From assembly GCF_046119375.1 (NCBI RefSeq), contig NW_027362769.1:401884001-401948000 (forward strand): a DNA stretch of 64,000 bases. Direction: 5' to 3'. The DNA is from Phyllobates terribilis. Its lineage: Eukaryota. This document shows, in pieces, positions 6,637-63,604 of the stretch; within the stretch, counting starts at the first letter, position 1; every line of letters starts with the position of its first letter. The notes under the pieces were generated by a model, which did not search any database, had not been told where the DNA came from, and was given only the letters and a program-made list of their open reading frames with translations. A program made the position numbers and the translations under genes.

Positions 6637-6691
6637 CTCCAATCACCGAGGACGAGGCCTGGAGGAAGAGAAAGCGTCAGGATGGCGCCGG

Positions 6692-9625: not shown

Positions 9626-9859
9626 CTTGTTGACCCCCATGTCCTGGACTTTGGTGCACAGATACATGACCTCCTGAGGCCGATCGGGTGACTGCAGAGT
9701 AACAGCGGCTGCAGCTCTGGATGTGACTGGAGTAGTAGAAGTGATGTGATGAATACAAACACCGCGCTGTGGAGTGCAAGCTCTTGGGTCCAGGACCTGA
9801 GCAGGCAGCGCTACTATATCACCTGGCTGTGTGACCCCTGTACACTTATCCACAGGTGG

Positions 9860-32699: not shown

Positions 32700-33940
32700 T
32701 GGCCCCTAGACATGATGATGACCTGTGGCGTGGGTGGCCCCTAGAGATGATGGTGCTACGTGGCTCTGGTGGCCCCTAGAGACGATGGTGACCCGTGGCT
32801 CTGGTGGCCCCTAGAGATGATGGTGCTACGTGGCTCTGGTGGCCCCTAGAGATGATGGTGCTACGTGGCTCTGGTGGCCCCTAGAGATGATGGTGCTACG
32901 TGGCGCTGGTGGCTCTAGAGATGATGGTGCTACGTGGCACTGGTGGCTCTAGAGATGATGGTGCTACATGGCGCTGGTGGCCCCTAGAGATGATGGTGAC
33001 TCGTGGCTCTGGTGGCCCCTAGAGATGATGGTGACCCGTGGCTCTGGTGGCCCCTAGAGATGATGGTGAACCGTGGCTCTGGTGGCCCCTAGAGACGATG
33101 GTGACCCGTGACGCTGGTGGCTCTAGAGATGGTGACCCGTGGCTCTGGTGGCCCCTAGAGATGATGGTGACACATGATGCTGGTGGCTCTAGAGATGATG
33201 GTGACCCGTGGCTCTGGTGGCCCCTAGAGATGATGGTGACTCGTGGTGCTGGTGGCTCTAGAGATGATGGTGACCCGTGGCTCTGGTGGCCCCTAGAGAT
33301 GATGGTGACCCGTGGCTCTGGTGGCCCCTAGAGACAATGGTGACCCGTGATGCTGGTGGCTCTAGAGATGGTGACCCGTGGCTCTGGTGGCCCCTAGAGA
33401 TGATGGTGCTACGTGGCGCTTGTGGCTCTAGAGATGATGGTGACCCGTGGTGCTGGTGGCTCTAGAGATGGTGGTGACCTGTGGCGCTGGTGGCTCTAGA
33501 GATGATGGTGACCCGTGGCGCTGGTTGCTCTAGAGATGATGGTGACCCGTGGTGCTGGTGGCTCTAGAGATGGTGGTTACCCGTGGCGCTGGTGGCCCCT
33601 AGAGATGATGGTGACCCGTGGCACTGGTGGCTCTAGAGATGATGGTGACCCGTGGCGCTGGTGGCTCTAGAGATGATGGTGACCCGTGGTGCTGGTGGCT
33701 CTAGAGATGGTGGTGACCCGTGGTGCTGGTGGCTCTAGAGATGATGGTGACCCGTGGTGCTGGTGGCTCTAGAGATGGTGGTGACCCGTGGTGCTGGTGG
33801 CCCCTAGAGATGATGGTGACCCGTGGTGCTGGTGGCCCCTAGAGATGATGGTGACCCGTGGCGCTGGTGACCTCTAAAGATGATGGTGCCCCGTGGCGCT
33901 GGTGGCTCTAGAGACGATGGTGCCCCGTGGCGCTGGTGGC
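32700..33940. repeat. 34-35-bp minisatellite (GTGGCTCTGGTGGCCCCTAGAGATGATGGTGACCC), in the inferred 3' UTR of the IFI44-like gene
   Basis: Direct periodicity. It abuts the stop codon at 33943. The first minus-strand AATAAA beyond it is at 32647-32652. Confidence 0.93.
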
Positions 33941-33942
33941 CA

Positions 33943-39900: not shown

Positions 39901-42900
39901 GACATCATACTGTGTGTGGGGGAATGTACTGTGGGGACATCATACTGTGTGTGGTGGGAATGTACTGTGAGGACATCATACTGTGTGGGGGAATGTACTG
40001 TGGGGACATCATACTGTGTGTGTGGAGAATGTACTGTGGGGACATCATACTGTGTAGAGGGAATGCACTGTGGGGACATCATACTGTGTGTGGAGAATGT
40101 ACTGTGGGGACATCATACTGTGTGTGGGGGGAATGTACTGTGAGGACATCATACTGTGTGTGTGGAGGGAATGTACTGTGAGGACATCATACTGTGTGGG
40201 GGGAATGTACTGTGGGGACATCATACTGTGTGTGGGGGAATGTACTGTGAGGACATCATACTGTGTGTGGGGGAATGTACTGTGAGGACATCATACTGTG
40301 TGTGGGGGAATGTACTGTGAGGACATCATACTGTGTGTGGGGGAATGTACTGTGAGGACATCATACTGTGTGGGGGAATGTACTGTGGGGACATCATACT
40401 GTGTGTGTGGGGGAATGTATTGTGAGGACATCATACTGTGTGAAAGGCTGTGGGAACACATTGGGTAGGTGGGTCATGGATGCATGATACTGTGTGGGCA
40501 GCCTCAGGGGAGAAATACTTTGGTGATATACTGTGTGTGGGGGGAATGTACTGTGAGGACATCATACTGTGTGGGGGAATGTACTGTGGGGACATCATAC
40601 TGTGTGTGTGGGGGAATGTACTGTGAGGACATCATACTGTGTGTGGGGGAATGTACTGTGGGGACATCATACTGTGTGTGTGGGGGAATGTACTGTGGGG
40701 ACATCATACTGTGTGTGTGGGGGAATGTACTGTGGGGACATCATACTGTGTGTGGGGGGAATGTACTGTGAGGACATCATACTGTGTGTGGGGGAATGTA
40801 CTGTGGGGACATCATACTGTGTGTGGAGGAATGTACTGTGGGGACATCATACTGTGTGTGGAGGAATGTACTGTGGGGACATCATACTGTGTGTGGAGGA
40901 ATGTACTGTGGGGACATCATACTGTGTGGGGGAATGTACTGTGGGGACATCATACTGTGTGGGGGAATGTACTGTGGGGACATCATACTGTGTGTGGGGG
41001 GAATGTACTGTGGGGACATCCTACTGTGTGTGGGGGAATGTACTGTGAGGACATCATACTGTGTGTAGAGGAATGTACTGTGAGGACATCATACTGTGTG
41101 TGGGGGGAATGTACTGTGAGGACATCATACTGTGTGGAGGGAATGTACTGTGAGTACATCATACTGTGTGGGGGGAATGTACTGTGGGGACATCATACTG
41201 TGTGTGGAGGAATGTACTGTGAGGACATCATACTGTGTGTAGAGGAATGTACTGTGAGGACATCATACTGTGTGTGGGGGGAATGTACTGTGGGGACATC
41301 ATACTGTGTGTGGGGGGAATGTACTGTGGGGACATCATACTGTGTGTGGGGGGAATGTACTGTGGGGACATCATACTGTGTGTGGGGAATGTACTGTGGG
41401 GACATCATACTGTGTGTGGAGGGAATGTACTGTGGGGACATCATACTGTGTGTGGAGGGAATGTACTGTGGGGACATCATACTGTGTGTGGAGGGAATGT
41501 ACTGTGGGGACATCATACTGTGTGTGTGGGGAATGTACTGTGGGGACATCATACTGTGTGTGGGGGAATGTACTGTGGGGACATCATACTGTGTGTGTGG
41601 GGGAATGTACTGTGGGGACATCATACTGTGTGTGGTGGGAATGTACTGTGAGGACATACTGTGTGGGGGAATGTACTGTGAGGACATCATACTGTGTGTG
41701 TGGAGGAATGTACTGTGGGGACATCATACTGTGTGTGGAGAATGTACTGTGGGGACATCATACTGTGTAGAGGGAATGTACTGTGAGGACATCATACTGT
41801 GTGTGGGGGAATGTACTGTGGGGACATCATACTGTGTGTGTGGGGGAATGTACTGTGGGGACATCATACTGTGTGTGTGGGGGAATGTACTGTGGGGACA
41901 TCATACTGTGTGTGTGGGGGAATGTACTGTGAGGACATCATACTGTGTGTGGGGGAATGTACTGTGGGGACATCATACTGTGTGTGTGGGGGAATGTACT
42001 GTGGGGACATCATACTGTGTGTGGGGGAATGTACTGTGGGGACATCATACTGTGTGTGGGGGGGAATGTACTGTGGGGACATCATACTGTGTGTGGGGGG
42101 GAATGTACTGTGGGGACATCATACTGTGTGGTGGGAATGTACTGTGAGGACATCATACTGTGTGGGGGAATGTACTGTGGGGACATCATACTGTGTGTGG
42201 AGGAATGTACTGTGGGGACATCATACTGTGTGTGGAGGAATGTACTGTGGGGACATCATACTGTGTGGGGGAATGTACTGTGGGGACATCATACTGTGTG
42301 GGGGAATGTACTGTGGGGACATCATACTGTGTGGGGGAATGTACTGTGGGGACATCATACTGTGTGTGGGGGGAATGTACTGTGGGGACATCATACTGTG
42401 TGTGGGGGAATGTACTGTGAGGACATCATACTGTGTGTAGAGGAATGTACTGTGAGGACATCATACTGTGTGTGGGGGAATGTACTGTGGGGACATCATA
42501 CTGTGTGTGGGGGGAATGTACTGTGAGGACATCATACTGTGTGGAGGGAATGTACTGTGAGGACATCATACTGTGTGGAGGGAATGTACTGTGAGGACAT
42601 CATACTGTGTGGGGGGAATGTACTGTGGGGACATCATACTGTGTGTGGAGGAATGTACTGTGAGGACATCATACTGTGTGTAGAGGAATGTACTGTGAGG
42701 ACATCATACTGTGTGTGGGGGGAATGTACTGTGGGGACATCATACTGTGTGTGGGGGGAATGTACTGTGGGGACATCATACTGTGTGTGGGGAATGTACT
42801 GTGGGGACATCATACTGTGTGTGGAGGGAATGTACTGTGGGGACATCATACTGTGTGTGGAGGGAATGTACTGTGGGGACATCATACTGTGTGTGTGGGG

Positions 42901-45900
42901 AATGTACTGTGGGGACATCATACTGTGTGTGGGGGAATGTACTGTGGGGACATCATACTGTGTGTGTGGGGGAATGTACTGTGGGGACATCATACTGTGT
43001 GTGGTGGGAATGTACTGTGAGGACATCATACTGTGTGTGTGGAGGAATGTACTGTGGGGACATCATACTGTGTGTGGAGAATGTACTGTGGGGACATCAT
43101 ACTGTGTAGAGGGAATGTACTGTGAGGACATCATACTGTGTGTGGGGGAATGTACTGTGGGGACATCATACTGTGTGTGTGGGGGAATGTACTGTGGGGA
43201 CATCATACTGTGTGTGTGGGGGAATGTACTGTGGGGACATCATACTGTGTGTGTGGGGGAATGTACTGTGGGGACATCATACTGTGTGTGTGGGGGAATG
43301 TACTGTGGGGACATCATACTGTGTGTGTGGGGGAATGTACTGTGGGGACATCATACTGTGTGTGGTGGGAATGTACTGTGAGGACATACTGTGTGGGGGA
43401 ATGTACTGTGAGGACATCATACTGTGTGTGTGGAGGAATGTACTGTGGGGACATCATACTGTGTGTGGAGAATGTACTGTGGGGACATCATACTGTGTAG
43501 AGGGAATGTACTGTGAGGACATCATACTGTGTGTGGGGGAATGTACTGTGGGGACATCATACTGTGTGTGTGGGGGAATGTACTGTGGGGACATCATACT
43601 GTGTGTGTGAGGGAATGTACTGTGGGGACATCATACTGTGTGTGTGGGGGAATGTACTGTGAGGACATCATACTGTGTGTGGGGGAATGTACTGTGGGGA
43701 CATCATACTGTGTGTGTGGGGGAATGTACTGTGGGGACATCATACTGTGTGGGGGGGAATGTACTGTGGGGACATCATACTGTGTGTGGGGGGGAATGTA
43801 CTGTGGGGACATCATACTGTGTGGTGGGAATGTACTGTGAGGACATCATACTGTGTGGGGGAATGTACTGTGGGGACATCATACTGTGTGTGGAGGAATG
43901 TACTGTGGGGACATCATACTGTGTGTGGAGGGAATGTACTGTGGGGACATCATACTGTGTGGGGGAATGTACTGTGGGGACATCATACTGTGTGGGGGAA
44001 TGTACTGTGGGGACATCATACTGTGTGTGGGGGGAATGTACTGTGGGGACATCATACTGTGTGTGGGGGAATGTACTGTGAGGACATCATACTGTGTGTG
44101 GGGGAATGTACTGTGAGGACATCATACTGTGTGTAGAGGAATGTACTGTGAGGACATCATACTGTGTGTGGGGGAATGTACTGTGGGGACATCATACTGT
44201 GTGTGGGGGGAATGTACTGTGAGGACATCATACTGTGTGGAGGGAATGTACTGTGAGGACATCATACTGTGTGGAGGGAATGTACTGTGAGGACATCATA
44301 CTGTGTGGGGGGAATGTACTGTGGGGACATCATACTGTGTGTGGAGGAATGTACTGTGAGGACATCATACTGTGTGTAGAGGAATGTACTGTGAGGACAT
44401 CATACTGTGTGTGGGGGGAATGTACTGTGGGGACATCATACTGTGTGTGGGGGGAATGTACTGTGGGGACATCATACTGTGTGTGGGGAATGTACTGTGG
44501 GGACATCATACTGTGTGTGGAGGGAATGTACTGTGGGGACATCATACTGTGTGTGGAGGGAATGTACTGTGGGGACATCATACTGTGTGTGTGGGGAATG
44601 TACTGTGGGGACATCATACTGTGTGTGGGGGAATGTACTGTGGGGACATCATACTGTGTGTGTGGGGGAATGTACTGTGGGGACATCATACTGTGTGTGG
44701 TGGGAATGTACTGTGAGGACATCATACTGTGTGTGTGGAGGAATGTACTGTGGGGACATCATACTGTGTGTGGAGAATGTACTGTGGGGACATCATACTG
44801 TGTAGAGGGAATGTACTGTGAGGACATCATACTGTGTGTGGGGGAATGTACTGTGGGGACATCATACTGTGTGTGTGGGGGAATGTACTGTGGGGACATC
44901 ATACTGTGTGTGTGGGGGAATGTACTGTGGGGACATCATACTGTGTGTGTGGGGGAATGTACTGTGGGGACATCATACTGTGTGTGTGGGGGAATGTACT
45001 GTGGGGACATCATACTGTGTGTGTGGGGGAATGTACTGTGGGGACATCATACTGTGTGTGTGGGGGAATGTACTGTGGGGACATCATACTGTGTGGGGGA
45101 ATGTACTGTGGGGACATCATACTGTGTGTGGGGGGGAATGTACTGTGGGGACATCATACTGTGTGTGGTGGGAATGTACTGTGAGGACATCATACTGTGT
45201 GGGGGAATGTACTGTGGGGACATCATACTGTGTGTGTGGAGAATGTACTGTGGGGACATCATACTGTGTAGAGGGAATGTACTGTGGGGACATCATACTG
45301 TGTGTGGAGAATGTACTGTGGGGACATCATACTGTGTGTGGGGGGAATGTACTGTGAGGACATCATACTGTGTGTGTGGAGGGAATGTACTGTGAGGACA
45401 TCATACTGTGTGGGGGGAATGTACTGTGGGGACATAATACTGTGTGTGGGGGAATGTACTGTGAGGACATCATACTGTGTGTGGGGGAATGTACTGTGAG
45501 GACATCATACTGTGTGGGGGAATGTACTGTGGGGATATCATACTGTGTGTGTGGGGGAATGTATTGTGAGGACATCATACTGTGTGAAAGGCTGTGGGAA
45601 CACATTGGGTAGGTGGGTCATGGATGCATGATACTGTGTGGGCGGCATCAGGGGAGAAATACTTTGGTGATATACTGTGTGTGGGGGGAATGTACTGTGA
45701 GGACATCATACTGTGTGGGGGAATGTACTGTGGGGACATCATACTGTGTGTGTGGGGGAATGTACTGTGAGGACATCATACTGTGTGTGGGGGAATGTAC
45801 TGTGGGGACATCATACTGTGTGTGTGGGGGAATGTACTGTGGGGACATCATACTGTGTGTGGGGGGAATGTACTGTGAGGACATCATACTGTGTGTGTGG

Positions 45901-48900
45901 AGGGAATGTACTGTGAGGACATCATACTGTGTGGGGGGAATATACTGTGGGGACATCATACTGTGTGTGGGGGAATGTACTGTGAGGACATCATACTGTG
46001 TGTGGGGGAATGTACTGTGAGGACATCATACTGTGTGGGGGAATGTACTGTGGGGACATCATACTGTGTGTGGGGGAATGTACTGTGAGGACATCATACT
46101 GTGTGTGGTGGAATGTACTGTGGGGACATCATACTGTGTATGGAGGAATGTATTGTGAGGACATCATACTGTGTGAAAGGCTGTGGGAACACATTGGGTA
46201 GGTGGGTCATGGATGCATGATACTGTGTGGGCGGCCTCAGGGGAGAAATACTTTGGTGATATCATACTGTGTGTGGGGGGAATGTACTGTGAGGACATCA
46301 TACTGTGTGGGGGAATGTACTGTGGGGACATCATACTGTGTGTGTGGGGGAATGTACTGTGAGGACATCATACTGTGTGTGGGGGAATGTACTGTGGGGA
46401 CATCATGCTGTGTGTGTGGGGGAATGTACTGTGGGGACATCATACTGTGTGTGTGGGGGAATGTACTGTGGGGACATCATACTGTGTGGGGGGAATATAC
46501 TGTGGGGACATCATACTGTGTGTGGGGGAATGTACTGTGAGGACATCATACTGTGTGTGGGGGAATGTACTGTGGGGACATCATACTGTGTATGGAGGAA
46601 TGTATTGTGAGGACATCATACTGTGTGAAAGGCTGTGGGAACACATTGGGTAGGTGGGTCATGGATGCATGATACTGTGTGGGCGGCCTCAGGGGAGAAA
46701 TACTTTGGTGATATCATACTGTGTGTGGGGGGAATGTACTGTGGGGACATCATACTGTGTGTGGAGGGAATGTACTATGGGGACATCATACTGTGTGTGG
46801 AGGAATGTACTGTGGAGACATCATACTGTGTGGGGGGAATGTACTGTGGAGACATCATACTGTGTGTGGGGGAATGTACTGTGAGGACATCATACTGTGT
46901 GTGTGGGGAATGTACTGTGGGGACATCATACTGTGTGTGGGGGAATGTACTGTGAGGACATCATACTGTGTGGGGGAATGTACTGTGAGGACATCATACT
47001 GTGTGGGGGAATGTACTGTGGGGACATCATACTGTGTGTGTGGGGGAATGTACTGTGGGGACATCATACTGTGTGTGGTGGGAATGTACTGTGAGGACAT
47101 CATACTGTGTGTGGGGGGAATGTACTGTGGAGACATCATTCTGTATGTGGGGGGAATGTACTGTGAGGACATCATACTGTGTGTGTGGAGGGAATGTACT
47201 GTGAGGACATCATACTGTGTGGGGGGAATATACTGTGGGGACATCATACTGTGTGTGGGGGAATGTACTGTGAGGACATCATACTGTGTGTGGGGGAATG
47301 TACTGTGAGGACATCATACTGTGTGGGGGAATGTACTGTGGGGACATCATACTGTGTGTGTGGGGGAATGTACTGTGAGGACATCATACTGTGTGTGGGG
47401 GAATGTACTGTGGGGACATCATACTGTGTATGGAGGAATGTATTGTGAGGACATCATACTGTGTGAAAGGCTGTGGGAACACATTGGGTAGGTGGGTCAT
47501 GGATGCATGATACTGTGTGGGCGGCCTCAGGGGAGAAATACTTTGGTGATATCATACTGTGTGTGGGGGGAATGTACTGTGGGGACATCATACTGTGTGT
47601 GGAGGGAATGTACTATGGGGACATCATACTGTGTGGGGGGAATGTACTGTGGAGACATCATACTGTGTGTGGGGGAATGTACTGTGAGGACATCATACTG
47701 TGTGTGTGGGGAATGTACTGTGGGGACATCATACTGTGTGTGGGGGAATGTACTGTGAGGACATCATACTGTGTGGGGGAATGTACTGTGGGGACATCAT
47801 ACTGTGTGTGTGGGGGAATGTACTGTGGGGACATCATACTGTGTGTGGTGGGAATGTACTGTGAGGACATCATACTGTGTGTGGGGGGAATGTACTGTGG
47901 AGACATCATACTGTATGTGGGGGGAATGTACTGTGAGGACATCATACTGTGTGTGGGGGAATGTACTGTGAGGACATCATACTGTATGTGGGGGGAATGT
48001 ACTGTGAGGACATCATACTGTGTGGGGGAATGTACTGTGGGGACATCATACTGTGTGTGGGGGAATGTACTGTGGAGACATCATACTGTGTGTGGGGAAT
48101 GTACTGTGAGGACATCATACTGTGTGTGGGGAATGTACTGTGAGGACATCATACTGTGTGTGGGGAATGTACTGTGGGGACATCATACTGTGTGGGGGAA
48201 TGTACTGTGGGGACATCATACTGTGTGTGGGGGGAATGTACTGTGGGGACATCATACTGTGTGTGGGGGAATGTACTGTGAGGACATCATACTGTGTGTA
48301 GAGGAATGTACTGTGAGGACATCATACTGTGTGTGGGGGGAATGTACTGTGGGGACATCATACTGTGTGTGGGGGGAATGTACTGTGGGGACATCATACT
48401 GTGTGTGGGGGGAATGTACTGTGGGGACATCATACTGTGTGTGGGGGGAATGTACTGTGGGGACATCATACTGTGTGTGGGGAATGTACTGTGGGGACAT
48501 CATACTGTGTGTGGGGGAATGTATTGTGAGGACATCATACTGTGTGTGGGGGAATGTACTGTGAGGACATCATACTGTGTGGGGGAATGTACTGTGAGGA
48601 CATCATACTGTGTGGGGGAATGTACTGCGAGGACATCATACTATGTGTGGGGGAATGTACTGTGGGGACATCATACTGTGTGTGGAGGAATGTACTGTGG
48701 GGACATCATACTGTGTATGGGGGAATGTACTGTGAGGACATCATACTGTGTGTGGAGGAATGTACTGTGGGGACATCATACTGTGTGTGGAGGAATGTAC
48801 TGTGAGGACATCATACTGTGTATGGGGGAATGTACTGTGAGGACATTATACTGTGTGTGGAGGAATGTACTGTGAGGACATCATACTGTGTGTGGGGGGA

Positions 48901-51900
48901 ATGTACTGTGGGGGCATCATACTGTGTGTGGGGGAATGTACTGTGAGGACATCATACTGTGTGTGGGGGAATGTACTGTGAGGACATCATACTGTGTGTG
49001 GGGAATGTACTGTGAGGACATCATACTGTGTATGGGGGAATGTACTGTGAGGACCTCATACTGTGTATGGGGGAATGTACTGTGAGGACATCATACTGTG
49101 TATGGGGGAATGTACTGTGGGGACATTATACTGTGTGTGGAGGAATGTACTGTGGGGACATTATACTGTGTGTGGAGGAATGTACTGTGAGGACATCATA
49201 CTGTGTGTGGGGGGAATGTACTGTGGGGGCATCATACTGTGTGTGGGGGAATGTACTGTGAGGACATCATACTGTGTGTGGGGGAATGTATTGTGAGGAC
49301 ATCATACTGTGTGTGGAGGGAATGTACTGTGGAGACATCATACTGTGTGTGGGGGAATGTACTGTGGGGACATCATACTGTGTGTGGGGGAATGTACTGT
49401 GGGGACATCATACTGTGTGTGGGGGAATGTATTGTGAGGACATCATACTGTGTGTGGGGGAATGTACTGTGAGGACATCATACTGTGTGTGGGGGAATGT
49501 ATTGTGAGGACATCATACTGTGTGTGGAGGGAATGTACTGTGGAGACATCATACTGTGTGTGGGGGAATGTACTGTGGGGACATCATACTGTGTGTGGAG
49601 GGAATGTACTGTGGGGACATCATACTGTGTGTGGGGGAATGTACTGTGGGGACATCATACTGTGTGTGGAGGGAATGTACTGTGGAGACATCATACTGTG
49701 TGTGGAGGGAATGTACTGTGGAGACATCATACTGTGTGTGGGGGAATGTACTGTGGGGACATCATACTGTGTGTGGGGTTATGTATTGTGAGGACATCAT
49801 ACTGTGTGTGGAGGGAATGTACTGTGAGGACATCATACTGTGTGTGGGGAATGTACTGTGGGGACATCATACTGTGTGTGGGGAATGTACTATGGGTACA
49901 TCATACTGTGTGTGGGGGAATGTATTGTGAGGACATCATACTGTGTGTGGGGGAATGTACTGTGAGGACATCATACTGTGTGGGGGGAATGTACTGTGGG
50001 GACATCATACTGTGTGTGGAGGAATGTACTGTGAGGACATCATACTGTGTGTGGAGGAATGTACTGTGAGGACATCATACTGTGTGTGGGGGGAATGTAC
50101 TGTGAGGACATCATACTGTGTGTGGGGGGGAATGTACTGTGAGGACATTATACTGTGTGTGGGGGAATGTACTGTGGGGACATTATACTGTGTGTGGGGG
50201 AATGTACTGTGAGGATATCATACTGTGTGTGGAGGAATGTACTGTGGGGACATTATACTGTGTGGGGGAATGTACTGTGAGGACATTATACTGTGTGGGG
50301 AATGTACTGTGGGGACATCATACTGTGTGTGGGGGAATGTACTGTGAGGACATTATACTGTGTGGGGGAATGTACTGTGGGGACATCATACTGTGTGTGG
50401 GGGAATGTACTGTGGGGACATCATACTGTGTGTGGGGGAATGTACTGTGAGGACATCATACTGTGTGGGGAATGTACTGTGAGAACATCATACTGTGTGT
50501 GGGGAATGTACTGTGAGGACATCATACTGTGTATGGGGGAATGTACTGTGAGGACATCATACTGTGTATGGGGGAATGTACTGTGGGGACATTATACTGT
50601 GTGTGGAGGAATGTACTGTGAGGACATCATACTGTGTGTGGGGGGAATGTACTGTGGGGGCATCATACTGTGTGTGGGGGAATGTACTGTGAGGACATCA
50701 TACTGTGTGTGGGGGAATGTACTGTGAGGACATCATACTGTGTGTGGGGAATGTACTGTGAGGACATCATACTGTGTATGGGGGAATGTACTGTGAGGAC
50801 ATCATACTGTGTATGGGGGAATGTACTGTGAGGACATCATACTGTGTATGGGGGAATGTACTGTGGGGACATTATACTGTGTGTGGAGGAATGTACTGTG
50901 GGGACATTATACTGTGTGTGGAGGAATGTACTGTGAGGACATCATACTGTGTGTGGGGGGAATGTACTGTGGGGGCATCATACTGTGTGTGGGGGAATGT
51001 ACTGTGAGGACATCATACTGTGTGTGGGGGAATGTACTGTGAGGACATCATACTGTGTGTGGGGGAATGTACTGTGAGGACATCATACTGTGTGTGGGGG
51101 AATGTACTGTGAGGACATCATACTGTGTGTGGGGGAATGTACTGTGAGGACATCATACTGTGTGTGGAGGAATGTACTGTGAGGACATCATACTGTGTGT
51201 GGGGAATGTACTGTGGGGGCATCATACTGTGTGTGGGGGAATGTACTGTGAGGACATCATACTGTGTGTGGGGGGAATGTAGTGTGGAGACATCATACTG
51301 TGTGTGGAGGAATGTACTGTGGGGACATCATACTGTGTGTGGGGGGAATGTACTGTGGGGGCATCATACTGTGTGTGGAGGAATGTACTGTGAGGACATC
51401 ATACTGTGTGTGGGGAAAGTACTGTGGGGACATCATACTGTGTGGGGGGGGTGTACTGGGGGGACATCATACTGTGTGTGGGGGAATGTACTGTGAGGAC
51501 ATCATACTGTGTGTGGGGCATGTACTGTGGGGACATCATACTGTGTGTGGGGGAATGTACTGTGGGGACATCATACTGTGTGTGGAGGGAATGTACTGTG
51601 GAGACATCATACTGTGTGTGGAGGGAATGTACTGTGGAGACATCATACTGTGTGTGGGGGAATGTACTGTGGGGACATCATACTGTGTGTGGGGTTATGT
51701 ATTGTGAGGACATCATACTGTGTGTGGAGGGAATGTACTGTGAGGACATCATACTGTGTGTGGGGAATGTACTGTGGGGACATCATACTGTGTGTGGGGA
51801 ATGTACTATGGGTACATCATACTGTGTGTGGGGGAATGTATTGTGAGGACATCATACTGTGTGTGGGGGAATGTACTGTGAGGACATCATACTGTGTGGG

Positions 51901-54900
51901 GGGAATGTACTGTGGGGACATCATACTGTGTGTGGAGGAATGTACTGTGAGGACATCATACTGTGTGTGGAGGAATGTACTGTGAGGACATCATACTGTG
52001 TGTGGGGGGAATGTACTGTGAGGACATCATACTGTGTGTGGGGGGGAATGTACTGTGAGGACATCATACTGTGTGTGGGGGAATGTACTGTGGGGACATT
52101 ATACTGTGTGTGGGGGAATGTACTGTGAGGATATCATACTGTGTGTGGAGGAATGTACTGTGGGGACATTATACTGTGTGGGGGAATGTACTGTGAGGAC
52201 ATTATACTGTGTGGGGAATGTACTGTGGGGACATCATACTGTGTGTGGGGGAATGTACTGTGAGGACATTATACTGTGTGGGGGAATGTACTGTGGGGAC
52301 ATCATACTGTGTGTGGGGGAATGTACTGTGAGGACATCATACTGTGTGGGGAATGTACTGTGAGAACATCATACTGTGTGTGGGGAATGTACTGTGAGGA
52401 CATCATACTGTGTATGGGGGAATGTACTGTGAGGACATCATACTGTGTATGGGGGAATGTACTGTGGGGACATTATACTGTGTGTGGAGGAATGTACTGT
52501 GAGGACATCATACTGTGTGTGGGGGGAATGTACTGTGGGGGCATCATACTGTGTGTGGGGGAATGTACTGTGAGGACATCATACTGTGTGTGGGGGAATG
52601 TACTGTGAGGACATCATACTGTGTGTGGGGAATGTACTGTGAGGACATCATACTGTGTATGGGGGAATGTACTGTGAGGACATCATACTGTGTATGGGGG
52701 AATGTACTGTGAGGACATCATACTGTGTATGGGGGAATGTACTGTGGGGACATTATACTGTGTGTGGAGGAATGTACTGTGGGGACATTATACTGTGTGT
52801 GGAGGAATGTACTGTGAGGACATCATACTGTGTGTGGGGGGAATGTACTGTGGGGGCATCATACTGTGTGTGGGGGAATGTACTGTGAGGACATCATACT
52901 GTGTGTGGGGGAATGTACTGTGAGGACATCATACTGTGTGTGGGGGAATGTACTGTGAGGACATCATACTGTGTGTGGGGGAATGTACTGTGAGGACATC
53001 ATACTGTGTGTGGGGGAATGTACTGTGAGGACATCATACTGTGTGTGGAGGAATGTACTGTGAGGACATCATACTGTGTGTGGGGAATGTACTGTGGGGG
53101 CATCATACTGTGTGTGGGGGAATGTACTGTGAGGACATCATACTGTGTGTGGGGGGAATGTAGTGTGGAGACATCATACTGTGTGTGGAGGAATGTACTG
53201 TGGGGACATCATACTGTGTGTGGGGGGAATGTACTGTGGGGGCATCATACTGTGTGTGGAGGAATGTACTGTGAGGACATCATACTGTGTGTGGGGAAAG
53301 TACTGTGGGGACATCATACTGTGTGGGGGGGGTGTACTGGGGGGACATCATACTGTGTGTGGGGGAATGTACTGTGAGGACATCATACTGTGTGTGGGGC
53401 AAGTACTGTGGGGACATCATACTGTGTGGGGGGGGATGTACTGTGAGGACATCATACTGTGTGTGGAGGAATGTACTGTGAGGACATCATACTGTGTGTG
53501 GAGGAATGTACTGTGAGGACATCATACTGTGTGGGGGGGGATGTATTGTGGGGACATCATACCATGTGAGTGTGGGGGAAATGTAGTGTGGGGACATCAT
53601 ACTGTGTGAGTGTGGGGGAAATGTAGTGTGGGGACATCATACTGTGTGAGTGGGGGAAATGTAGTGTGGGGACATCATACTGTGTGTGTGGGGGGGGAAT
53701 ATAGTGTGGGGACATCTTGCTGTGTGTGGGGGGGATGTAGTGTGGGGATATCATACTGTGTGTGGAGGAATGTACTGTGAGGACATCATACTGTGTGTGG
53801 AGGAATGTACTGTGAGGACATCATACTGTGTGGGGGGGGATGTACTGTGGGGACATCATACCATGTGAGTGTGGGGGAAATGTAGTGTGGGGACATCATA
53901 CTGTGTGAGTGTGGGGGAAATGTAGTGTGGGGACATCATACTGTGTGAGTGGGGGAAATGTAGTGTGGGGACATCATACTGTGTGTGTGGGGGGGGGAAT
54001 ATAGTGTGGGGACATCTTGCTGTGTGTGGGGGGGATGTAGTGTGGGGATATCATACTGTGTGTGTGTGGGGGGAATGTAGTATGGAGACATCTTGCTGTG
54101 TGTGGGGGAATATAGTGTGGGGACATCTTGCTGTGCGTGGGGGAATGTAGTGTGGGGACATCTTGCTGTGCGTGGGGGAATGTAGTGTGAGGACATCTTG
54201 CTGTGCGCGGGGGAATGTAGTGGGGGGACATCATACTGTGTGTGTGGGGGAATGTAGTGTGGGGACATTGCTGTGTGTGGGGGAATGTAGTGTGGGGACA
54301 TCTTGCTGTGTGGGGGAATGTAGTGTGGGGACATCTTGCTGTGCGTGGGGGAATGTAGTGTGGGGACATCTTGCTGTGCGCGGGGGAATGTAGTGGGGGA
54401 CATTATACTGTGTGTGTGTGGGGGGAATGTAGTGTGGGGACATCATACTGTGTGGGGGGAATGTAGTGTGGGGACATCAAACTGTGTGGGGGGAATGTAG
54501 TGTGGGGACATCTTGCTGTGTGGGGGAATGTAGTTTGGGGACATCTTGCTGTGCGTGGGGGAATGTAGTGTGGGGAAATCTTGCTGTGCGCGGGGGAATG
54601 TAGTGGGGGGACATTATACTGTGTGTGTGTGGGGGGAATGTAGTGTGGGGACATCATACTGTGTGGGGGGAATGTAGTGTGGGGACATCACCCTGTGGGT
54701 GGGAGGTGGTAAAATGTACTGCTGTGATGGGGCTCTGTGACTTCTAGTTACACATCCTGTACATTGCATTGGCGGTGTAGGATAATGAGTGCAGCCAGTT
54801 CTTTGAGGTTGTACCCAGCAGGAGCCGCTGTGTTCTTGGCTGTAATGTGATTGTATGATCCACGTGTTGTAATAAAACTATTCTTGTTTTCTGTGGGAAC

Positions 54901-55694
54901 TCACCGGTCATAGTTGTACAGCCGCGCAGGAAGGAATTCATCTCAGCTGCATCCTCATGGATCTGTAATCCTCCGCTGTAAATTATAACAATATATAATG
55001 GAATCATAAATCTTAGTAGACTAATCCAAGAGAAAGAGACATTTATGAGGGCCCCTCTAGCAGTGTGATGGTGCCCACCCCCTCCCCCAGGATCCAGTTT
55101 AATATCACATGATTTACCAGTGCACCAACACGGGAACGGTGAGATCTGTGGAGTTAGGTTCCAAATCCGTCTCCTCCACTTTCTCTACCAGGTCTTCATA
55201 TTCAGTGAGTTTTGCCACTGGCTCATCCAGGGGGAGGAAGGTTCCTGAGAAGGAAGGAATTAAGGATGAGGCTGCAGATCTCATTACCACCATTGTAATA
55301 TCCATAGAAGGAAGAACTACAAGACGTAAGAGCGAGGACGTCACCGATCTGGTGGAGTCTGGGACAGGACCTTCTCACCGAGCTGAGCGTAGACTGTGGG
55401 TATTTCCCTGTAGCCCACGTACATCATGCCTCTGTTGTCCGCTATGGTGATGTTGGGGGTGAGCTGGTACGTCTTCCTGACCACGGTGGGCTTATCGCTG
55501 GCGTGCATGACGTATTCTCCTCCCTCCAGGACATACTTACAGGAGTTGATCAGCATTGACTTCCCAGATCCCACCGTGCCAAACAGCTGAAGTAGCACCC
55601 GCCGGTAGCCCTGATTACCGTGCACGCCGCCCTCCAGGCTGAAGTCACGGATATACTTCAACATTTCATCCACGGACATCTGCGGGTTTTGCAT
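33943..55694 (-). CDS. IFI44-like P-loop NTPase/GTPase (no TLDc domain seen), 4 exons, 279 aa
   Basis: Exons (minus): 55379-55694, 55118-55244, 54905-54975, 33943-34268 = 840 nt, phases compatible. Walker A GTVGSGKS (55557-55580) after a hydrophobic strand RVLLQLF; DxxG motif IADNRG; G4-like strand PIIIITRK; C-terminal VLVENY..E....D.AILTFL pattern as in IFI44/IFI44L; basic helical tail. Confidence 0.72.
34470..34850. repeat. ~90-bp tandem repeat (~4.5 copies) of a common frog interspersed satellite
   Basis: TTATCAGTCATT...GAGCTGTGACATC...TTATCTACTGTATATAGAGG recurs about every 90 bp. Confidence 0.85.
35245..35345. repeat. 19-bp tandem repeat (GCGCACACAGTACAGAGAA)x5
   Basis: Direct observation. 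Confidence 0.9.
35398..35500 (+). mobile_element. 5'-truncated SINE tail, same family as 31252-31515
   Basis: TAGATTGTGAGCCCCAATGGGGACAGTGATGATAATGTCTGTAAAGCGCTGTGGAATTAATGGCGCTATATAAG...AATAAATAAA. Confidence 0.7.
35560..54690. repeat. ~19-kb minisatellite, ~35-bp unit (GGGAATGTACTGTGRGGACATCATACTGTGTGTGG), with higher-order structure; intronic in the IFI44-like gene
   Basis: Unit length is 33-37 bp, varying through (GT)n and (G)n slippage. A non-unit module is inserted at 35571, 40442, 45586, 46175, 46627 and 47465. A diverged subtype occurs at 53550-54690. Confidence 0.97.
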
Positions 55695-55736: not shown

Positions 55737-57893
55737 GTTCAGAGTTCAGGGCGCGGCCGTCGCCTGCGAACATAATCCGTGACGAATAATGAAGGACGCA
55801 CCCACTGCCTGCTGAAGAATACCAGCTCATCATCTGCCGACAACCAGCCTGGATACATGAGAGGTTTTGAGCCGCCCCCCGGTGATCACATCACTGATAT
55901 AATTACATTGTGATAGAAATAATGGAAGAGAGACACAAAACGGGAAACTTGTATTTTTTTTTTTTTGTATGTTTTTAGTAATTTTTTTTTTATTTTTCAT
56001 TGTTATTCAGAGACGAACCAGATCTAGCGCTAGAACCTTTTAATAAACCAAAACCTCTAATAATAACTTCAACTACTTCGGTATGATGCACATTTAGTGC
56101 AGATTATTGATTTCTACTCCTTTCATGGATTTCCTGAAGTTCGCGATGACGTCACCGCGGGATGAAGTGAAGACGGCGGCGGTTATAGATTCTGCTCTAT
56201 TTTTCTTTTTGTACTCAACACCGATCCCTGCAGTATATATGCGGAATAACCTCGTGTGACGGATCAACCCCGTACTCCAAGATTTTGCCACATGGGGGTT
56301 GTCGTAGCGCCTATGTAGCTAATGGGACATAATGTTATAAAGTGGGGTGAATATTGTGGATTACATATTGTTGGACATTCTGTGATGTGACCGAAGCACT
56401 CTTGGCCCCCACCTTCCTGTGCTCACTTAGCAGTGGCAAACAGACAATGTGCTGATTAATGGGTTGTTGCATAACTGCTGTCTGGGAGCCTACTGTGGGG
56501 ATTATTTGGTGAGAACAATGGGTGCTAAAAATAGCCTGTGTGATTCTCTATAAAACCTGCTTGTGAGAATAAAAGTTTACTTCATCTTGGAGACACTGTG
56601 CGATAGTCCTATTTTATATATCCCAGTGTAAGAAAAGCCTTTCCATGTCAGGGGCCTGCAGAAGAAGATTGGACATCTGCGGATGGGGTAACTAGCTCCT
56701 GTCACACCTCGTTACCTACAGAAGGATCCTCCCCGCTCTCCAGCTCAGATGACATGATGCCTTGCTGCACTTCTATGTGGCGGATTGCATGTTACATTGG
56801 TGACAATGACACCTGCACCTGTGTCTAAACCAGCCGGCGACTGGCACTGGGGATAGCGGAGGGATCGTCTGTCCATCAGGGTTTTCATATGTGACTGGAC
56901 ATGGAGGTTTCCTCAACTCATATTGGGCAGGGATTAGAGATGAGCATTTCTATTCAATGCGAGTCAAATGTGTTGAATTTGGACTATAGTAGCCTGTATA
57001 AAAGCAGAGGCAGGGAATGCAGCTGCAGTTTTGTACTAAGTCTTGATAGTGAGAACACATCAGTCCGAAAAAAACAGAACAATCTAGTAAAGATTAATGC
57101 GTTAGGAAAGGAATAATAGAGAATTGATAAGTAGAGAGCGGACAGCGGTGATGAATCACGGTGATTATAGTGCAGTTGCTGCATTTTAGTTACGTTTTTT
57201 TCATTCTTCATGCAGAGGTAATCCAGCAATATTGCTAAAGGGAAAAAAAAATCTCACTGAAAGTCTGCGCACGTCACAAAAGTCTGAACCGTGCGTGTCA
57301 CCTGCTCATTTTGACATACACACTTCCGACACCAATACTTGCCAAAAAGGAATTATCACCACCTAAAACATCGCTTTTTACATTCACGCCCCCTGTATAA
57401 CACTGGCACAGCGGGGTTCTGCCTTTCCCCAAAAGGGATAATTTTTAAAAAGCTTAAACCCCTCTCAGTGCATCGTGTTATCAGACGAGCTGTTAGCACC
57501 GGTCTGCATCCGTTTATCCCGAGCCACATGGAGGTCACGTAGACAATACAAAACCTGTAATTGCGTGAATAATAGGGGTTGGATTGAGGGTGACACGTCT
57601 TCTCCGGGCACAAGGAGGCTTTTTGTAGTATTTGAACTTTATGGCAAATCGATTCCTGTTAAATCAATTGTTTCAAAAAATGCGGCAAAACCGGAGAATT
57701 CCAACATTCTAAAGATTCACTCGTGTAAATCGGAGATGGTTGACCATCGTTGTTCGATGGCCGATGTCTGGTATTTTTAAAAGGTTTCCAATAACAGATA
57801 TATTCTAATCTCTAATTAGTGCGATTCATCCTCATCGGCTTTGGGTACAGACCCATCGTTTATCACCGGCTCCTTCCTTCGTAGATGTTTTCT

Positions 57894-60800
57894 TTATTTC
57901 TCCTCCGTTACTTTCTTCTCATCTCCGGTGAACAGGAACACATCGGTGGCCAACGACTTGAGTTTGGGCTGTTCCTTCAGGATCTCATTCTTCCTCTCTT
58001 CACTACTGTCCTTCAGGTCATCGATCACCACAATCACGTTCTTCTTTTCTGTTTTTTCGGAAACATATTCTCTCGTTAAAACAAAATTACTTATTATAAA
58101 AAAGAGGAGAAAAAAGAATCAAAGGATTAGAGACCAATATTACCGCTATATAAGATTATTAAATACCACCCCACGATGACTACATAATACCATGGTATAG
58201 TAACTGGATAATGCCGTAATACCGATCTTTTAAGGGATTGTCCACCCCTGAATAATATTCAGCAAGCCATGCAGGTTGCTGAATCCCAGTAGTAGGATTC
58301 GGCTCTGCTTGCCGATCCAGCCGGTATGTGAGCAGAGCCGAACCCCAATGGTGTGTGTTCCTCAGACACCGCTAGGATACAGACAGCTGCATTGTTTGCC
58401 TCAACTTCACTCACAGATGTACAATCCTTTTAATAAATATGAATGTACCAATATCGATATTTGCATCAATATTGCCATTAATAAAGAAATAATAGCGCCA
58501 GACAACAACCAGCATATACTATAGTGCTAATACTGATCATTAATCACTGTACTAGGGCTGATATCACCATCATACAGTGACCATATAATGGTAATAGTTC
58601 AGTGCTCTGTACAGATAAATCCAGTGGTGCGCGCTGATCATAGTTATTCACTTTCCCTTTTGTTTTCCATTCGGCCCAGACCACCATGACCACTTCTCCA
58701 CTTCTTCCATCCATAACTCGGCCCAGCAGAATGTACATTGGCTTCCTGCTTTTCCCAGCTGCTATAACCAGTGCCCTACACAGTAATAATGCCATTCTAG
58801 GACCTGCACAGTAATTGTACCCTCCTTTTGTGCCCCACACAATCATAATGTTATTAATTTGGGGATTGATTTATTTTACGTCATTTAGAAGTCCCTCCGG
58901 TTTATTCCGGCCTCAGAGCCGTCTTTGCTTTTAATTTTTCCTCTTCACTATTTTTTTCATGTTCTCATTGTATCAGAGATTGTTTGTTTTTTTTTCTATC
59001 ACAGATTTCATTGTTATCATCACCATTTTGGTGTCTTTATGATCTCTTTTTATTCCATTTTTTGGGAGGCAAAGTACTCTCCAAAAAACAGCAATTCTGA
59101 TGGTTTCCTTTTTATTTATTTTGGCGTTCACTGTATGGGGTGAATATTATGATATTTCATTAGTTTGGCCAATTACGAACGATAGCAAATAAATGGTATT
59201 TGTCCCTCTAGGGTACGTGAACCAGGGGTCACCTGATCGATTGTAATATTGCAGTGGATTATAAAACACCCGACCTCCTGTGGCTCGGCGTCATAGGTGG
59301 CGGACGCAGTAGCCTTCACTAGACCCCTCTCCTGTGCACCTCGGAGGTGTCTCTATGGCTGCCTCCTTGTACCAGTCCATCCTCTCCCACGGTCTCCCAT
59401 CACTATCTCTTACCCAGCTTTGCGAACAGTTCTTTTAGCTCCTCGTCGTACAGAGAGTCTGTGATGTCCGTGAGATTGACTCGTCCTCTGTTCTGGGTAT
59501 GATACAGGATCCCAAAGTCACACCTCGACACGTTCCCCGAAAACTCTGGTAACCCGTTGTTGGAGATGTAATAAGGCCGGACGCTCTTTACAAAGGACTC
59601 AGATTCCAGCATTCTCTTCAGCCAATCATATTCACTCTCCGCTGACCTCGAAAAAATCCCAACTTTTACCTTGTGAAAATAAGAACGTAAAAACCATTGT
59701 AACTGTATAGAAAGTCAATCACTGACTGTATAGAAAGTCAATCACTGACTGCATAGAAAGAAACCCAGTGATTTCTTCTTATTGTCATGGGATCATTGAG
59801 TCTCTGGAAAAACGCTTGCCTAAGGCAAAAATGAAGTAACTAGGGTGTAATAGAAAAACAGACAAAGAAAAAAAACCCAGAATAAAATGTAACTTTTAAA
59901 AGATATTTTAAAAGGCCGACTAATTGGTCACAGAATGGACAAACACCATAAAAATGTCGGTGCAACAAAGGGTAATGATCAGGGGTACGATGAAATAATG
60001 TCATTCAGGCTGGCCCTAGATGTCCCTAAATAAACTAGGACCCTACCTGACAGCGGACGCTTATCACCCTAGCGAGACGGTTTGGTGTCCCCGCTCCACG
60101 TCGGCTGTCCCTTGATTGCCCTATTAGGCCCTCGCACCAGACATACATTAACTAAATATTACTTGGCAAAATTTTTTATCCTATGCAGTGGTACTGCCCA
60201 GGTCACGGCCAGATATCTATACACATGTAATGGGGTGCTAAACATAGTTCAAACTCAATCAAGAGATAAAAACAGAAATAATCAATGATCTCAGAAAAGC
60301 AAATAAACACCTTTTATGATCTGTCATCGGATTATGTGCATTCGCGCCCCACTATACATGTCTGTGTTAGTGGGACCTTATTGTAGGGAGTAACGCCAGT
60401 TTGGGGATTAATTCCTTACCCCACAATGGTAGTTACGTTGTTTGAACGCATTTACGCTCCAGGTTAGGTGGCTAGCTGCGCATTGGTTCGCGCGGGTTGG
60501 GGGCATGACCGGAAGTTACGTGACCGGACGTCTCGTTACTGGAACGCAGCTGCGCTCCACCAGGACGCAGCGGTGACACATCAAGTGTCTCATTGGGCAC
60601 AAGGGTATCACTGCTCTCCTCGGATATGACCTCTAGACTCCTGATTCTAATTGGTGGGTGGATTTTTGGCGCGTGATCACGGCTATATGAATGGGGATGT
60701 CTGCTACAATGTTGAATCAGCCATTTGCTCTGATGGTCCATGGCAGATACACTGATACTGCCGATGCTCCTATTATGGTGTTTCTCCTAATCTGTCCCCT

Positions 60801-63604
60801 GATGAACCCTGAACTAGGAGAAGGTGAAACGCGTTGGCATAGCTGCTGGCATCTATTGTGCCATGATTTTGGGACCTTTTCCTATGCATTGGTGCAACCT
60901 ACAGGATTCTGCCTGAATTGATCTACCCGGTCCTTTTTTGAAAGCAATCTACTACCTAGCTCAGATAAGTTCATTTTTCTCTTATAGTACATATTGCAGT
61001 GTTTATTTGCTTTTCTGAGATCATTGATTATTTCTCTGTTTTTATCTCTTGATTGAGTTTGAACTATATCTAGCACCCATCATATGTGTATAGATATCTG
61101 GCCGTGACCTGGGCAGTACCACTGCATAGGATAAAGAATTTTGCCAAGTAATTTTTAGTTAATGTATGTCTGGTGCGAGGGCCTAATAGGGCAATCAAGG
61201 GACAGCTGACGTGGAGCGATGACACCAAACGTCTCGCTAGGGTGATAAACGTCCGCTGTCAGGTAGGGTCCTAGTTCATTTAGGGACATCTAGGGCCAGC
61301 CTGAATGACATTATTTCATCGTACCCCTGATCATTACCCTTTGTTGCACCGACATTTTTATGGTGTTTGTCCATTCTGTGACCAATTAGTCGGTCTTTTA
61401 AAATATCTATTAAAAGTTACATTTTACTCTGGGGTTTTTTCTTTGTCTGTTGATCATTGAGTCTCTTCCTTAAAGGTGTGAAAAATGTCATGGTAGATTT
61501 TCTAAATGGGCTAAAGTCAGGAGTGGACACCACAAGGATCTGTACTGGGAGCAGTGGAGACACCAAGGATTTGTGCTGGGAGCAGAGAAGACCAGAATGA
61601 TCTGTACTGGGAGCAGAGGAGACCACAGGGATCTGTACTGGAAGCAGATGAGACCACAAGGATCTGTACTGGGAGCAGAGGAGACCACAGGGATCTGTAC
61701 TGGGAGCAGAGGAGACCACAGGGATCTGTACTGGAAGCAGATGAGACCACAAGGATCTGAACTGGGAATAGATGAGACCACAAGGATCTGAACTGGGAAC
61801 AGATGAGACCATAAGGATCTGTGCTGGGAGCAGAAAAGACCAGAATGATCTCTACTGGGAGCAGAGGAGACCAGAATGATCTCTACTGGGAGCAGAGGAG
61901 ACCATAAGGATCTCTACTGGGAGTAGAAGAGACCAGAATAATCTGTACTGGGAACAGAGGAGACCACAGGGATATTTACTGGGAACAGATGAGACCACAA
62001 GGATCTGTACTGGGAGCAGAAGAGACCATAAGGATCTCTACTGGGTGCAGAGGAGACCATAAGGATCTCTACAGGGTGCAGAGGAGACCAGAAGGATCTC
62101 TACTGGGAGCAGAGGAGATCAGAAGGATCTCTACTGGGAGCAGAGGAGATCAGAAGGATCTCTACTGGGAGCAGAGGAGACCAGAAGGATCTCTACTGGG
62201 AGCAGAGGAGACCATAAGGATCTCTACTGGGAGCAGAGGAGACCATAAGGATCTCTACTGGGAGCAGAGGAGACCATAAGGATCTCTACTGGGAGCAGAG
62301 GAAACCATAAGGATCTCTACTGGGAGCAGAGGAGACCATAAGGATCTGTACTGGGAGTAGATGAGACCACAAGGATCTGTACTGGGAGTAGGGGAGACCA
62401 CAAGGATCTGAACTGGCAGCAGATGAGACCACAAGGATCTGTACTGGGAGCAGATGAGACCACAAGGATCTGTACTCGGAGCAGGGGAGACCAGAATGAT
62501 CTGTTCTGGGAGCAGATGAGACCATAGGGATCTGTACTGGGAGCAGATGAGACCACAAGGATCTGTACTGGCAGCAGATGAGACCACAAGGATCTGTACT
62601 GGGAGTAGAGGAGACTACAAGGATCTGTACTGGGAGCAGAGGAGACCTCAGGGATCTGTACTGGGAGCAGATGAGACCACAAGGATCTGTACTGGCAGCA
62701 GATGAGACCACAAGGATCTGTACTGGGAGTAGAGGAGACTACAAGGATCTGTACTGGGAGCAGAGGAGACCACAGGGATCTGTACTGGGAGTAGAGGAGA
62801 CTACAAGGATATGTACTGGGAGCAGAGGAGACCACAAGGATCTGTACTGGGAGCAGAGGAGACCACAAGGATCTGTACTGGGAGCAGAGGAGAGCACAGG
62901 GATCTGTACTGGGAGCAGATGAGACCACAGGGATCTGTACTGGGAGCAGAGGAGACCACAAGGATCTGTACTGGGAGCGGAGGAGACCACAAGGATCTGT
63001 ACTGGGAGCGTAGGAGACCACAAGGATCTGTACTGGGAGCAGAGGAGACCACAAGGATCTGTACTGGGAGCGTAGGAGACCACAAGGATCTGTACTGGGA
63101 GCAGAGGAGACCACAGGGATCTGTACTGGGAGCAGAGGAGACCACAGGGATCTGTACTGGGAGTAGAGGAGACTACAAGGATCTCTATGGGATTTAGTTC
63201 TGGCTCTACATTCTTAAAATTATATAGACTAGCAGGAGAAGGTTTGAGTTATGGTGGTAGAAGACAGGAGAGTGACCATAGGGGGTGCAGAGGGACACTT
63301 ACACCTGGACCCCGATACCTGAAGCCCCTTAAGAAGACACTCTTATTACAGATGGTAGGATGGGGCCCTTGTATAGATTTTACTCCGGGGCCCGGATTTA
63401 GATTGTGCTTCTATGGGAGGAAAATAATGAACTTCTCCACTTACCGGCCTGGGAGGTTTCCCTGAAAAATAGAACAAAAGAAGATTTCAGTAACTTTAAT
63501 ATTGAGCTGGAGAGAAAGTAAGAAAAGACGATTACTTTTCATTGTTCTTCGCATCTGACACATTTTTTCTTCAAATGAAGAACTTTTTCCGTGACTAAAT
63601 TCAC
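57894..63604 (-). CDS. Uncharacterised amphibian-type protein with a TIR-like (Rossmann-fold) domain; 5' end may lie beyond the window
   Basis: Exons (minus): 63536-63604 (phase 1-1), 63445-63461 (17-nt microexon, 1-0), 59414-59669 (0-1), 57894-58048 (1-stop). Translation: ...MRRTMKRKPPRP-VKVGIFSRSAESEYDWLKRMLESESFVKSVRPYYISNNGLPEFSGNVSRCDFGILYHTQNRGRVNLTDITDSLYDEELKELFAKL-EKKNVIVVIDDLKDSSEERKNEILKEQPKLKSLATDVFLFTGDEKKVTEEK*. All junctions are GT-AG and in frame. Confidence 0.7.
59806..61451. mobile_element. Penelope-like (PLE) non-autonomous insertion with ~450-bp inverted arms and a 15-bp target-site duplication
   Basis: Arms 59857-60310 and 60999-61451 are near-identical reverse complements. 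Direct repeat GATCATTGAGTCTCT lies at 59791-59805 and 61452-61466. There is a hammerhead motif in the spacer. Confidence 0.7.
60797..60837 (+). ncRNA. Minimal type I hammerhead ribozyme motif (PLE type)
   Basis: CC-CTGATGA (60799-60805)-ACC/loop/GGT (stem II)-GAAA (60826-60829)-CGCGT-T-GG. Palindromic ACGCGT stem III, predicted GUU cleavage after 60835, 2-bp stem I. Confidence 0.65.
61520..63190. repeat. 31-bp minisatellite (GAGACCACAAGGATCTGTACTGGGAGCAGAG)n
   Basis: Direct periodicity. Intronic in the TIR-like gene. Confidence 0.95.

Follow-up and report, generated by a model that had tools for sequence, protein, structure and literature searches.

In a 64,000-nucleotide stretch of the Phyllobates terribilis genome (RefSeq assembly GCF_046119375.1, contig NW_027362769.1, positions 401,884,001 to 401,948,000 of the forward strand; hereafter the window), two exons on the minus strand encode an alternating β/α domain that very probably belongs to the TIR superfamily, as a highly divergent member. 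The two exons are best explained as the C-terminal domain of an expressed gene whose product comprises an N-terminus of ~110 residues, one conserved helix and a 137-residue domain. That the domain is also a working enzyme, cleaving nucleotides by a putative mechanism centered on Glu210, is a serious possibility, although on balance we lean slightly against it.

The gene that carries this domain is annotated, although unnamed, and it is spliced and expressed. A sequence-only reading of the window had proposed two in-frame exons encoding an alternating β/α domain of ~135 residues, and the coordinates, the phase, the RNA joint, the 136-residue spliced peptide and an AlphaFold2 model all agree with that proposal. 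Exon A (59414-59669) encodes the domain from βA to αC (VKVGIFSRS...YDEELKELFAKL, together with base 1 of the junction codon) and is covered by RNA contigs at a depth of 100-300 over 59414-59670. Within it, the GAG codon at 59439-59441 specifies the conserved αC glutamate, which is E210 of the protein XP_073505027.1 and position 78 of the domain when residue 133 of that protein is counted as position 1. The exon closes with a G in phase 1 before a GT donor, and exon B opens after the AG acceptor at 58048, so that the intervening intron (58049-59413) is 1365 nt long with GT..AG ends. The coding part of exon B (57897-58048), supported by the spliced peptide, tblastn and RNA contigs, runs from βD to αE (..EKKNVIVVIDDL...FLFTGDEKKVTEEK) and joins exon A in phase; the codon split by the intron, G|AA, encodes the Glu of ...AKLEKKNV.... 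In each of four public runs (three bearing the label 'RNA?', the fourth of unknown kind), Logan contigs carry the exact 58048|59414 joint (4/4), and word depth in the contigs is 100-250 in the exons versus 0-4 in the intron. The TAA stop (57894-57896) lies at the start of a 3' untranslated region (UTR) of at least 590 nt (57300-57896 with the stop), across which RNA contigs are unbroken from 58048 to 57300. Contigs extend below 57300 as well, and one of 2707 nt carries 1255 nt further.

Upstream of exon A, on the same strand, a coding exon at 63536-63604 (...SEFSHGKSSSFEEKMCQMRRTMK) encodes the conserved helix ahead of the domain. A tblastn search with XP_073505027.1 (P0021 in our family set) places residues 106-127 at 63537-63602, in agreement with the splice context read there. 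Between this exon and exon A, a 17-nt micro-exon (63445-63461) with splice signals on both sides (acceptor AG, donor GT) finishes the codons of RKPPRP. All four runs show the micro-exon sequence in the contig loose end at 59670, and from that loose end the RNA contigs run on into the sequence of the 63536-63604 exon. The first ~105 codons of the gene fall outside the window. XP_073505027.1 is a P. terribilis protein of 269 residues, of which residues 134-269 are 100% identical to the spliced peptide, and RefSeq labels the gene 'uncharacterized protein' with isoforms X1-X4 (XP_073505026-29). Thus the locus, which had looked unannotated, is in fact in the public annotation. No second copy of the spliced peptide was found in the window by tblastn. 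Other RNA contigs match exon A over its first 30 nt but carry a different sequence upstream of it (loose ends at 59671); these contigs most likely derive from a paralogous gene, for example the gene for P0024/P0154, which lies on the same 418-Mb scaffold.

The structure of the domain was modelled with AlphaFold2 from an alignment of 131 family sequences filtered to <62% identity (A1), giving a predicted local distance difference test score (pLDDT) of 92.8 and a predicted template modelling score of 0.87. The model contains five β/α units, with five strands and five main helices, and a long loop connects strand 3 to helix C. This five-stranded parallel β-sheet with helices alternating from βA to αE is the fold of the TIR superfamily (Pfam clan STIR), and TIR domains are its best structural match. 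In a model of the full-length protein, residues 1-110 are of low confidence and are probably disordered, and a helix at residues 115-126 (pLDDT about 90), corresponding to the conserved SSFEEKMxQMRR motif, precedes the domain.

TIR domains were the best named matches in five structure searches (Foldseek against the PDB, AFDB Swiss-Prot and AFDB clusters, the ESM Atlas, and VIA-align), which bears out the TIR-like fold proposed from sequence, by a small margin. In the PDB the match was the TIR-STING structure 9lmq (E 2.8e-4), followed by generic flavodoxin-like proteins, nucleoside N-glycosidases and receiver domains. Three Cap12 TIR-STING proteins were found in AFDB Swiss-Prot (E 1.2e-4 to 5.7e-4, TM 0.56-0.59). 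Among the AFDB clusters, the top rows were members of the family itself, along with animal proteins of 18-32% identity that are uncharacterised and, by their accession prefixes, probably come from shark, sea urchin, lancelet and coral; clusters of Cap12/Pycsar TIRs, DUF4062 and ThsB ranked below these. The ESM Atlas shape search returned a PF10137 cluster (TM 0.67/0.70, root-mean-square deviation 2.8 Å, 115 residues). Outside its own family, the nearest named neighbours of the domain were CAP12/Pycsar, TIR-STING and RPS4/RRS1 TIRs. TIR is consistently the nearest named fold, with a small margin over flavodoxins and G domains, and among known relatives the domain is closest in shape to the CAP12/Pycsar and ThsB-type TIRs of bacteria and to plant TIRs.

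Given this small margin, it must be asked whether the domain has a different origin, as another flavodoxin- or Rossmann-like domain that resembles TIRs only through a shared three-layer α/β architecture. A degenerate G domain would be one such case, either a CENP-M-like pseudo-GTPase or a derivative of AIG1/GIMAP. These proteins share the three-layer arrangement of the frog domain, and they are its nearest named families in a search by language-model features, a result weakly at odds with the TIR assignment. However, the scores (0.63 for CENP-M, 0.55-0.59 for AIG1 GTPases) lie below the 0.9 reliability line of that search. Furthermore, the family consensus contains no P-loop, DxxG or NKxD motif (G1, G3 and G4): VGIFSRS stands where GxxxxGK[ST] would be expected, and N/TKxD is likewise lacking. 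The structural matches to G domains are partial on the target side, spanning 150-200 target residues for a 137-residue model, whereas TIR matches are one-to-one, and none amounts to a clear G-domain match. GTPases are absent from the best 30 Swiss-Prot Foldseek matches, at the top of which stand the three Cap12 TIRs, and PF10137 came first in the Atlas shape search. We therefore regard a non-TIR ancestry as very unlikely.

Sequence comparisons do not detect the relationship that structure suggests. At E≤10 the window protein had no Pfam match, and no usable Pfam family emerged for either exon, the full protein or the 131 members of A1. Among the TIR models considered (PF01582, PF13676, PF10137, PF08937 and PF18567), none matched at its curated threshold and only PF10137 appeared at all, in 3/131 members with a sub-threshold best E of 0.012, as expected of a family that standard TIR profiles would miss. 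Recurrent weak matches to DUF659, KAP_NTPase and STAND NTPases were rejected, as they arise from a short hhhhDD motif. Among PDB sequences, neither exon A by itself nor the family profile found anything significant, the best matches being caspase-3 p12 (E 0.24) and a transcription factor (E 0.74). We also aligned A1 with hhalign to narrow TIR targets, namely the product of E. coli CFT073 tcpC, that of the adjacent ThsB-type gene, and a 120-sequence ThsB profile (PF08937; Thoeris). The probabilities were non-significant, at 0.3% for the TcpC TIR, 1.2% for the ThsB-type TIR and 0.6% for the ThsB profile. In the best-scoring path the Glu of LYDxEL lies opposite the ThsB Glu of ...AHE... (FLAHEI) and strand D lies opposite strand D, with frog NVIVVIDDL facing NLPVVIANL. 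At probabilities of 0.6-1.2%, this path is consistent with homology to ThsB but is not evidence for it. The CFT073 target is of some interest in itself. The gene next to tcpC (L002:32764-35301; NC_004431.1 2202763-2205300) is a ThsB-type TIR gene (PF08937, E 2.5e-11) that is divergently paired with a macro-domain gene, in a stretch ending at a tRNA-Ser gene, and the two look like a macro-type Thoeris pair.

Within frogs the domain is common. An exhaustive HMMER search with exon A matched 360 representatives of 50% identity clusters at E≤1e-3 and 329 at E≤1e-10, and the family match can be judged far beyond chance because 329 cluster representatives match at E<1e-10. All members with a source-given name are frogs, from Ascaphus, Bombina and Discoglossus to Xenopus, Rana, Bufo and dendrobatids. 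A word-indexed search with the family profile likewise returned frog proteins only, with no bridging relatives, and PADLOC gave only noise on the 131 members. The lineage expansion that the sequence-only reading had suspected is thus apparent in these 360 clusters, which point to a family heavily duplicated in frogs. In the best 150 of the 360 matches, 69 proteins have one copy of the domain, 52 have two and 23 have three, with a maximum of six. The first copy in multi-copy proteins is often degenerate, as in copy 1 of Ascaphus P0043. Gene models of X. laevis, X. tropicalis, Discoglossus, Bombina and Hyperolius fuse two or three copies to a kinesin motor. Additionally, an Ascaphus member has a C-terminal CARD (E 6e-18), a Bombina member contains a URGCP/GVIN very-large-GTPase module (E 9e-160), and one Hyperolius gene model includes Ig domains. 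No nucleotide sensor domain was present among these partner domains (kinesin, CARD, URGCP/GVIN, Ig).

The window domain is of the same sequence family as the Xenopus cluster A0A1L8EZ87. The motifs VGIFSR, ILYHTKNRGRVN, SLYDEEL and VIVVIDDL are common to the window domain and the cluster member A0A803JPW1 of X. tropicalis (P0133), which is 54% identical to the window domain over its whole length. The P. terribilis protein represents another species and paralogue, and it differs from the Xenopus members by a 130-residue N-terminal extension and by a Glu in place of a near-invariant Gly at the splice-junction codon. This position, in the αC-βD turn, is Gly in 119/131 family members, and the Glu is shared by the dendrobatoid paralogues P0024 and P0046.

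The sequence-only reading had pointed to a glutamate in the motif YDEEL as a candidate catalytic residue. The second Glu of the motif (position 78, E210), which lies in the first turns of helix αC in the AlphaFold2 model, fits that role; the first is variable (E in 53/131) and does not. Glu78 is kept in 109/131 non-redundant copies, 259/304 full-length copies and 50/52 single-domain proteins (alignment A2). The remaining two of the 52 carry Gln, and Glu-to-Gln is the substitution used experimentally to inactivate TIR enzymes. The loops along the same edge of the sheet hold further near-invariant polar residues, namely Ser8/Arg9 following strand A, Tyr57/His58, the CC-loop residues Gly63-Arg64-x-Asn66 and Asp72, Tyr75/Asp76, Asp96/Asp97 following strand D, and Gln113. 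The 52 single-domain proteins, which come from many frog families, show no variation at nine polar or aromatic loop positions on the C-terminal edge of the sheet. Of 45 copies that lack Glu78, 32 have also lost Arg9 and 32 Asn66, while Tyr75 and Gln113 are each missing from 23 and Trp17 is kept. This co-loss in degenerate copies suggests that the residues form one functional site, although the shared ancestry of such copies inflates the statistics. The NAD+ pocket of SfSTING is built from S10, R78, N80, the catalytic E84 on αC and D110 of the D-D loop (PMC9402430), and the loop positions of the frog family may parallel it, a correspondence drawn by analogy rather than by superposition.

Hurieva et al. 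(bioRxiv 10.64898/2026.04.20.719644) superposed AlphaFold models on BcThsB and classed a TIR as putatively catalytic when the Cα of a Glu fell within 3 Å of E85. Their Table S2 lists the Xenopus cluster A0A1L8EZ87 as TIRs, with distances of 2.09 Å for GLU85 of A0A1L8EZ87 (X. laevis), 2.02 Å for GLU83 of A0A803JPW1 (X. tropicalis) and 2.3 Å for GLU182 of A0A8J1LQJ2 (X. laevis). E83 of A0A803JPW1, given as the catalytic position in their Tables S2 and S4, aligns with Glu78 of the window domain. Thus a conserved αC Glu occupies the catalytic position of TIR enzymes, with its placement in three dimensions taken from the published Xenopus superposition (2.0-2.3 Å from ThsB E85) and carried over to P. 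terribilis by alignment.

If the domain is an enzyme, a pocket would bind NAD+, or a nucleotide related to it, upon self-association. Four loops would make up this pocket: βA-αA, with Ser140/Arg141; BB; CC, with Arg196 and Asn198; and DD, with Asp228/Asp229. Glu210 on αC would cut the N-glycosidic bond. The outcome may be an ADP-ribose-type signal or NAD+ depletion in an innate-immune setting. This reading draws support from the strong conservation of the pocket-loop residues. It is weakened, however, because the one biochemical assay was negative: full-length A0A803JPW1 (174 residues; Table S4, row 27 of Hurieva et al.), expressed in E. coli, produced no cyclic ADP-ribose isomers and no NAD+ depletion. 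In the same screen 12/61 Glu-bearing animal TIRs were active. The authors caution that other products, the absence of native context or a dependence of activation on oligomerisation might mask activity.

The negative result would be expected if the domain were instead a non-enzymatic assembly or adaptor module, as in MyD88 and TIRAP, that nucleates signalling complexes, with the Glu and its polar neighbours serving folding or protein contacts. Besides the inactivity of the Xenopus member, 49/61 Glu-bearing animal TIRs were inactive in that screen, the tandem arrays and the CARD fusion suit scaffolding, and vertebrate TIRs are classically adaptors. Nevertheless, nine invariant loop positions in 52 single-domain proteins are more typical of a ligand-binding or active site than of an interface, the Glu is lost together with Arg9 and Asn66 in degenerate repeat copies, and a negative assay in E. 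coli is weak evidence. We find a purely adaptor role, the main rival to the enzyme reading, rather doubtful. A variant of the enzyme reading is that the frog family is a competent but unusual TIR, whose product lies outside the three cyclic ADP-ribose isomers assayed or which fires only when concentrated; the negative screen would therefore be explained, although we think this unlikely. If it were true, the kinesin fusions, with their two or three copies, and the arrays, with as many as six, would be built-in oligomers, a TIR effector arrangement undescribed in vertebrates.

Comparison with characterised systems places the domain closest to the CAP12/Pycsar TIRs (PF10137; SfSTING, CgCap12, BcPycTIR), which are its nearest named structural neighbours. 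Both have five β/α units, a Ser after βA, Arg and Asn in the CC loop, a Glu on αC and an Asp in the DD loop. Unlike these proteins, the frog family has no significant model match, and neither a PF10137 match nor an association with a STING, SAVED or other cyclic-nucleotide sensor domain places it among them. Its CC loop is about 8 residues longer, and the family is eukaryotic, intron-bearing and expanded in frogs. SARM1, to which the domain had been likened at first, shares its general TIR topology and an αC Glu about 10-13 residues before βD. However, the SARM1 Glu lies in a WxxxE context and the frog Glu in LYDxE, and SARM1 was not among the best 50 rows of the structure searches, where CAP12/Pycsar, TIR-STING and plant TIRs were nearest; a SARM1-type assignment is thus not borne out. 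The SARM1 fragments used in the first alignment by eye do match the SARM1 TIR in Table S4 of Hurieva et al., but the alignment was shifted by about two residues at βD.

The surroundings of the gene are dominated by satellite arrays. The largest (35649-54703; 19 kb) has a 35-bp unit in about 543 copies with 90% matches and a strong G-over-C skew, and takes up almost 1/3 of the window. A C-rich 44/132-bp tandem array covers 7.5 kb (17832-25370), and further arrays lie at 6687-9626 (41-bp, 2.9 kb), at 29472-30305 and 32700-33941 (38-bp and 35-bp), and at the window start (1-1163; 18-bp). The intron between the micro-exon and exon A contains a 31-bp tandem array of 54 copies (61525-63192), with long spurious open reading frames (ORFs) on both strands, and a near-perfect inverted repeat (59869-61440) whose ~440-nt arms (59869-60310 and 60999-61440) are 92-97% complementary and ~690 nt apart. 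The inverted repeat looks like a foldback or MITE-like (miniature inverted-repeat transposable element) insertion. About 2.2 kb downstream of the stop, on the same strand, an ORF (55341-55694) has a P-loop (GTVGSGKS) and no Pfam match; by Atlas features it falls among G domains of the MMR_HSR1/AIG1 type (score 0.92). This ORF probably opens the coding sequence of an adjacent GTPase gene of immune type, as its first coding exon. A fusion of the TIR-like domain to this ORF was considered and rejected: the frame closes at the stop, the RNA goes on as 3' UTR, and 0/192 family proteins have a similar region.

The TIR status of the family and its Glu at the catalytic position are already catalogued in the 2026 preprint of Hurieva et al., and the idea is not new. 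That preprint presents the frog family in tables only, with no account of its expansion, tandem arrays or fusions, and Culbertson et al. (10.64898/2026.04.30.722052) mapped divergent eukaryotic TIR clades without mentioning frogs. What is added here is a confirmed, expressed dendrobatid member and a description of the family architecture, rather than a system of a new kind. The TIR domains of vertebrates are commonly regarded as passive adaptors, SARM1 being the one that acts as an enzyme. Against this background, a frog-wide, heavily duplicated TIR-like family keeps the catalytic-position Glu and the full set of conserved pocket-loop residues, and it occurs in fusions with CARD, interferon-type GTPases and kinesin motors. 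If active, it would represent a second enzymatic TIR lineage in vertebrate immunity, in animals under threat from chytrid fungus and ranavirus.
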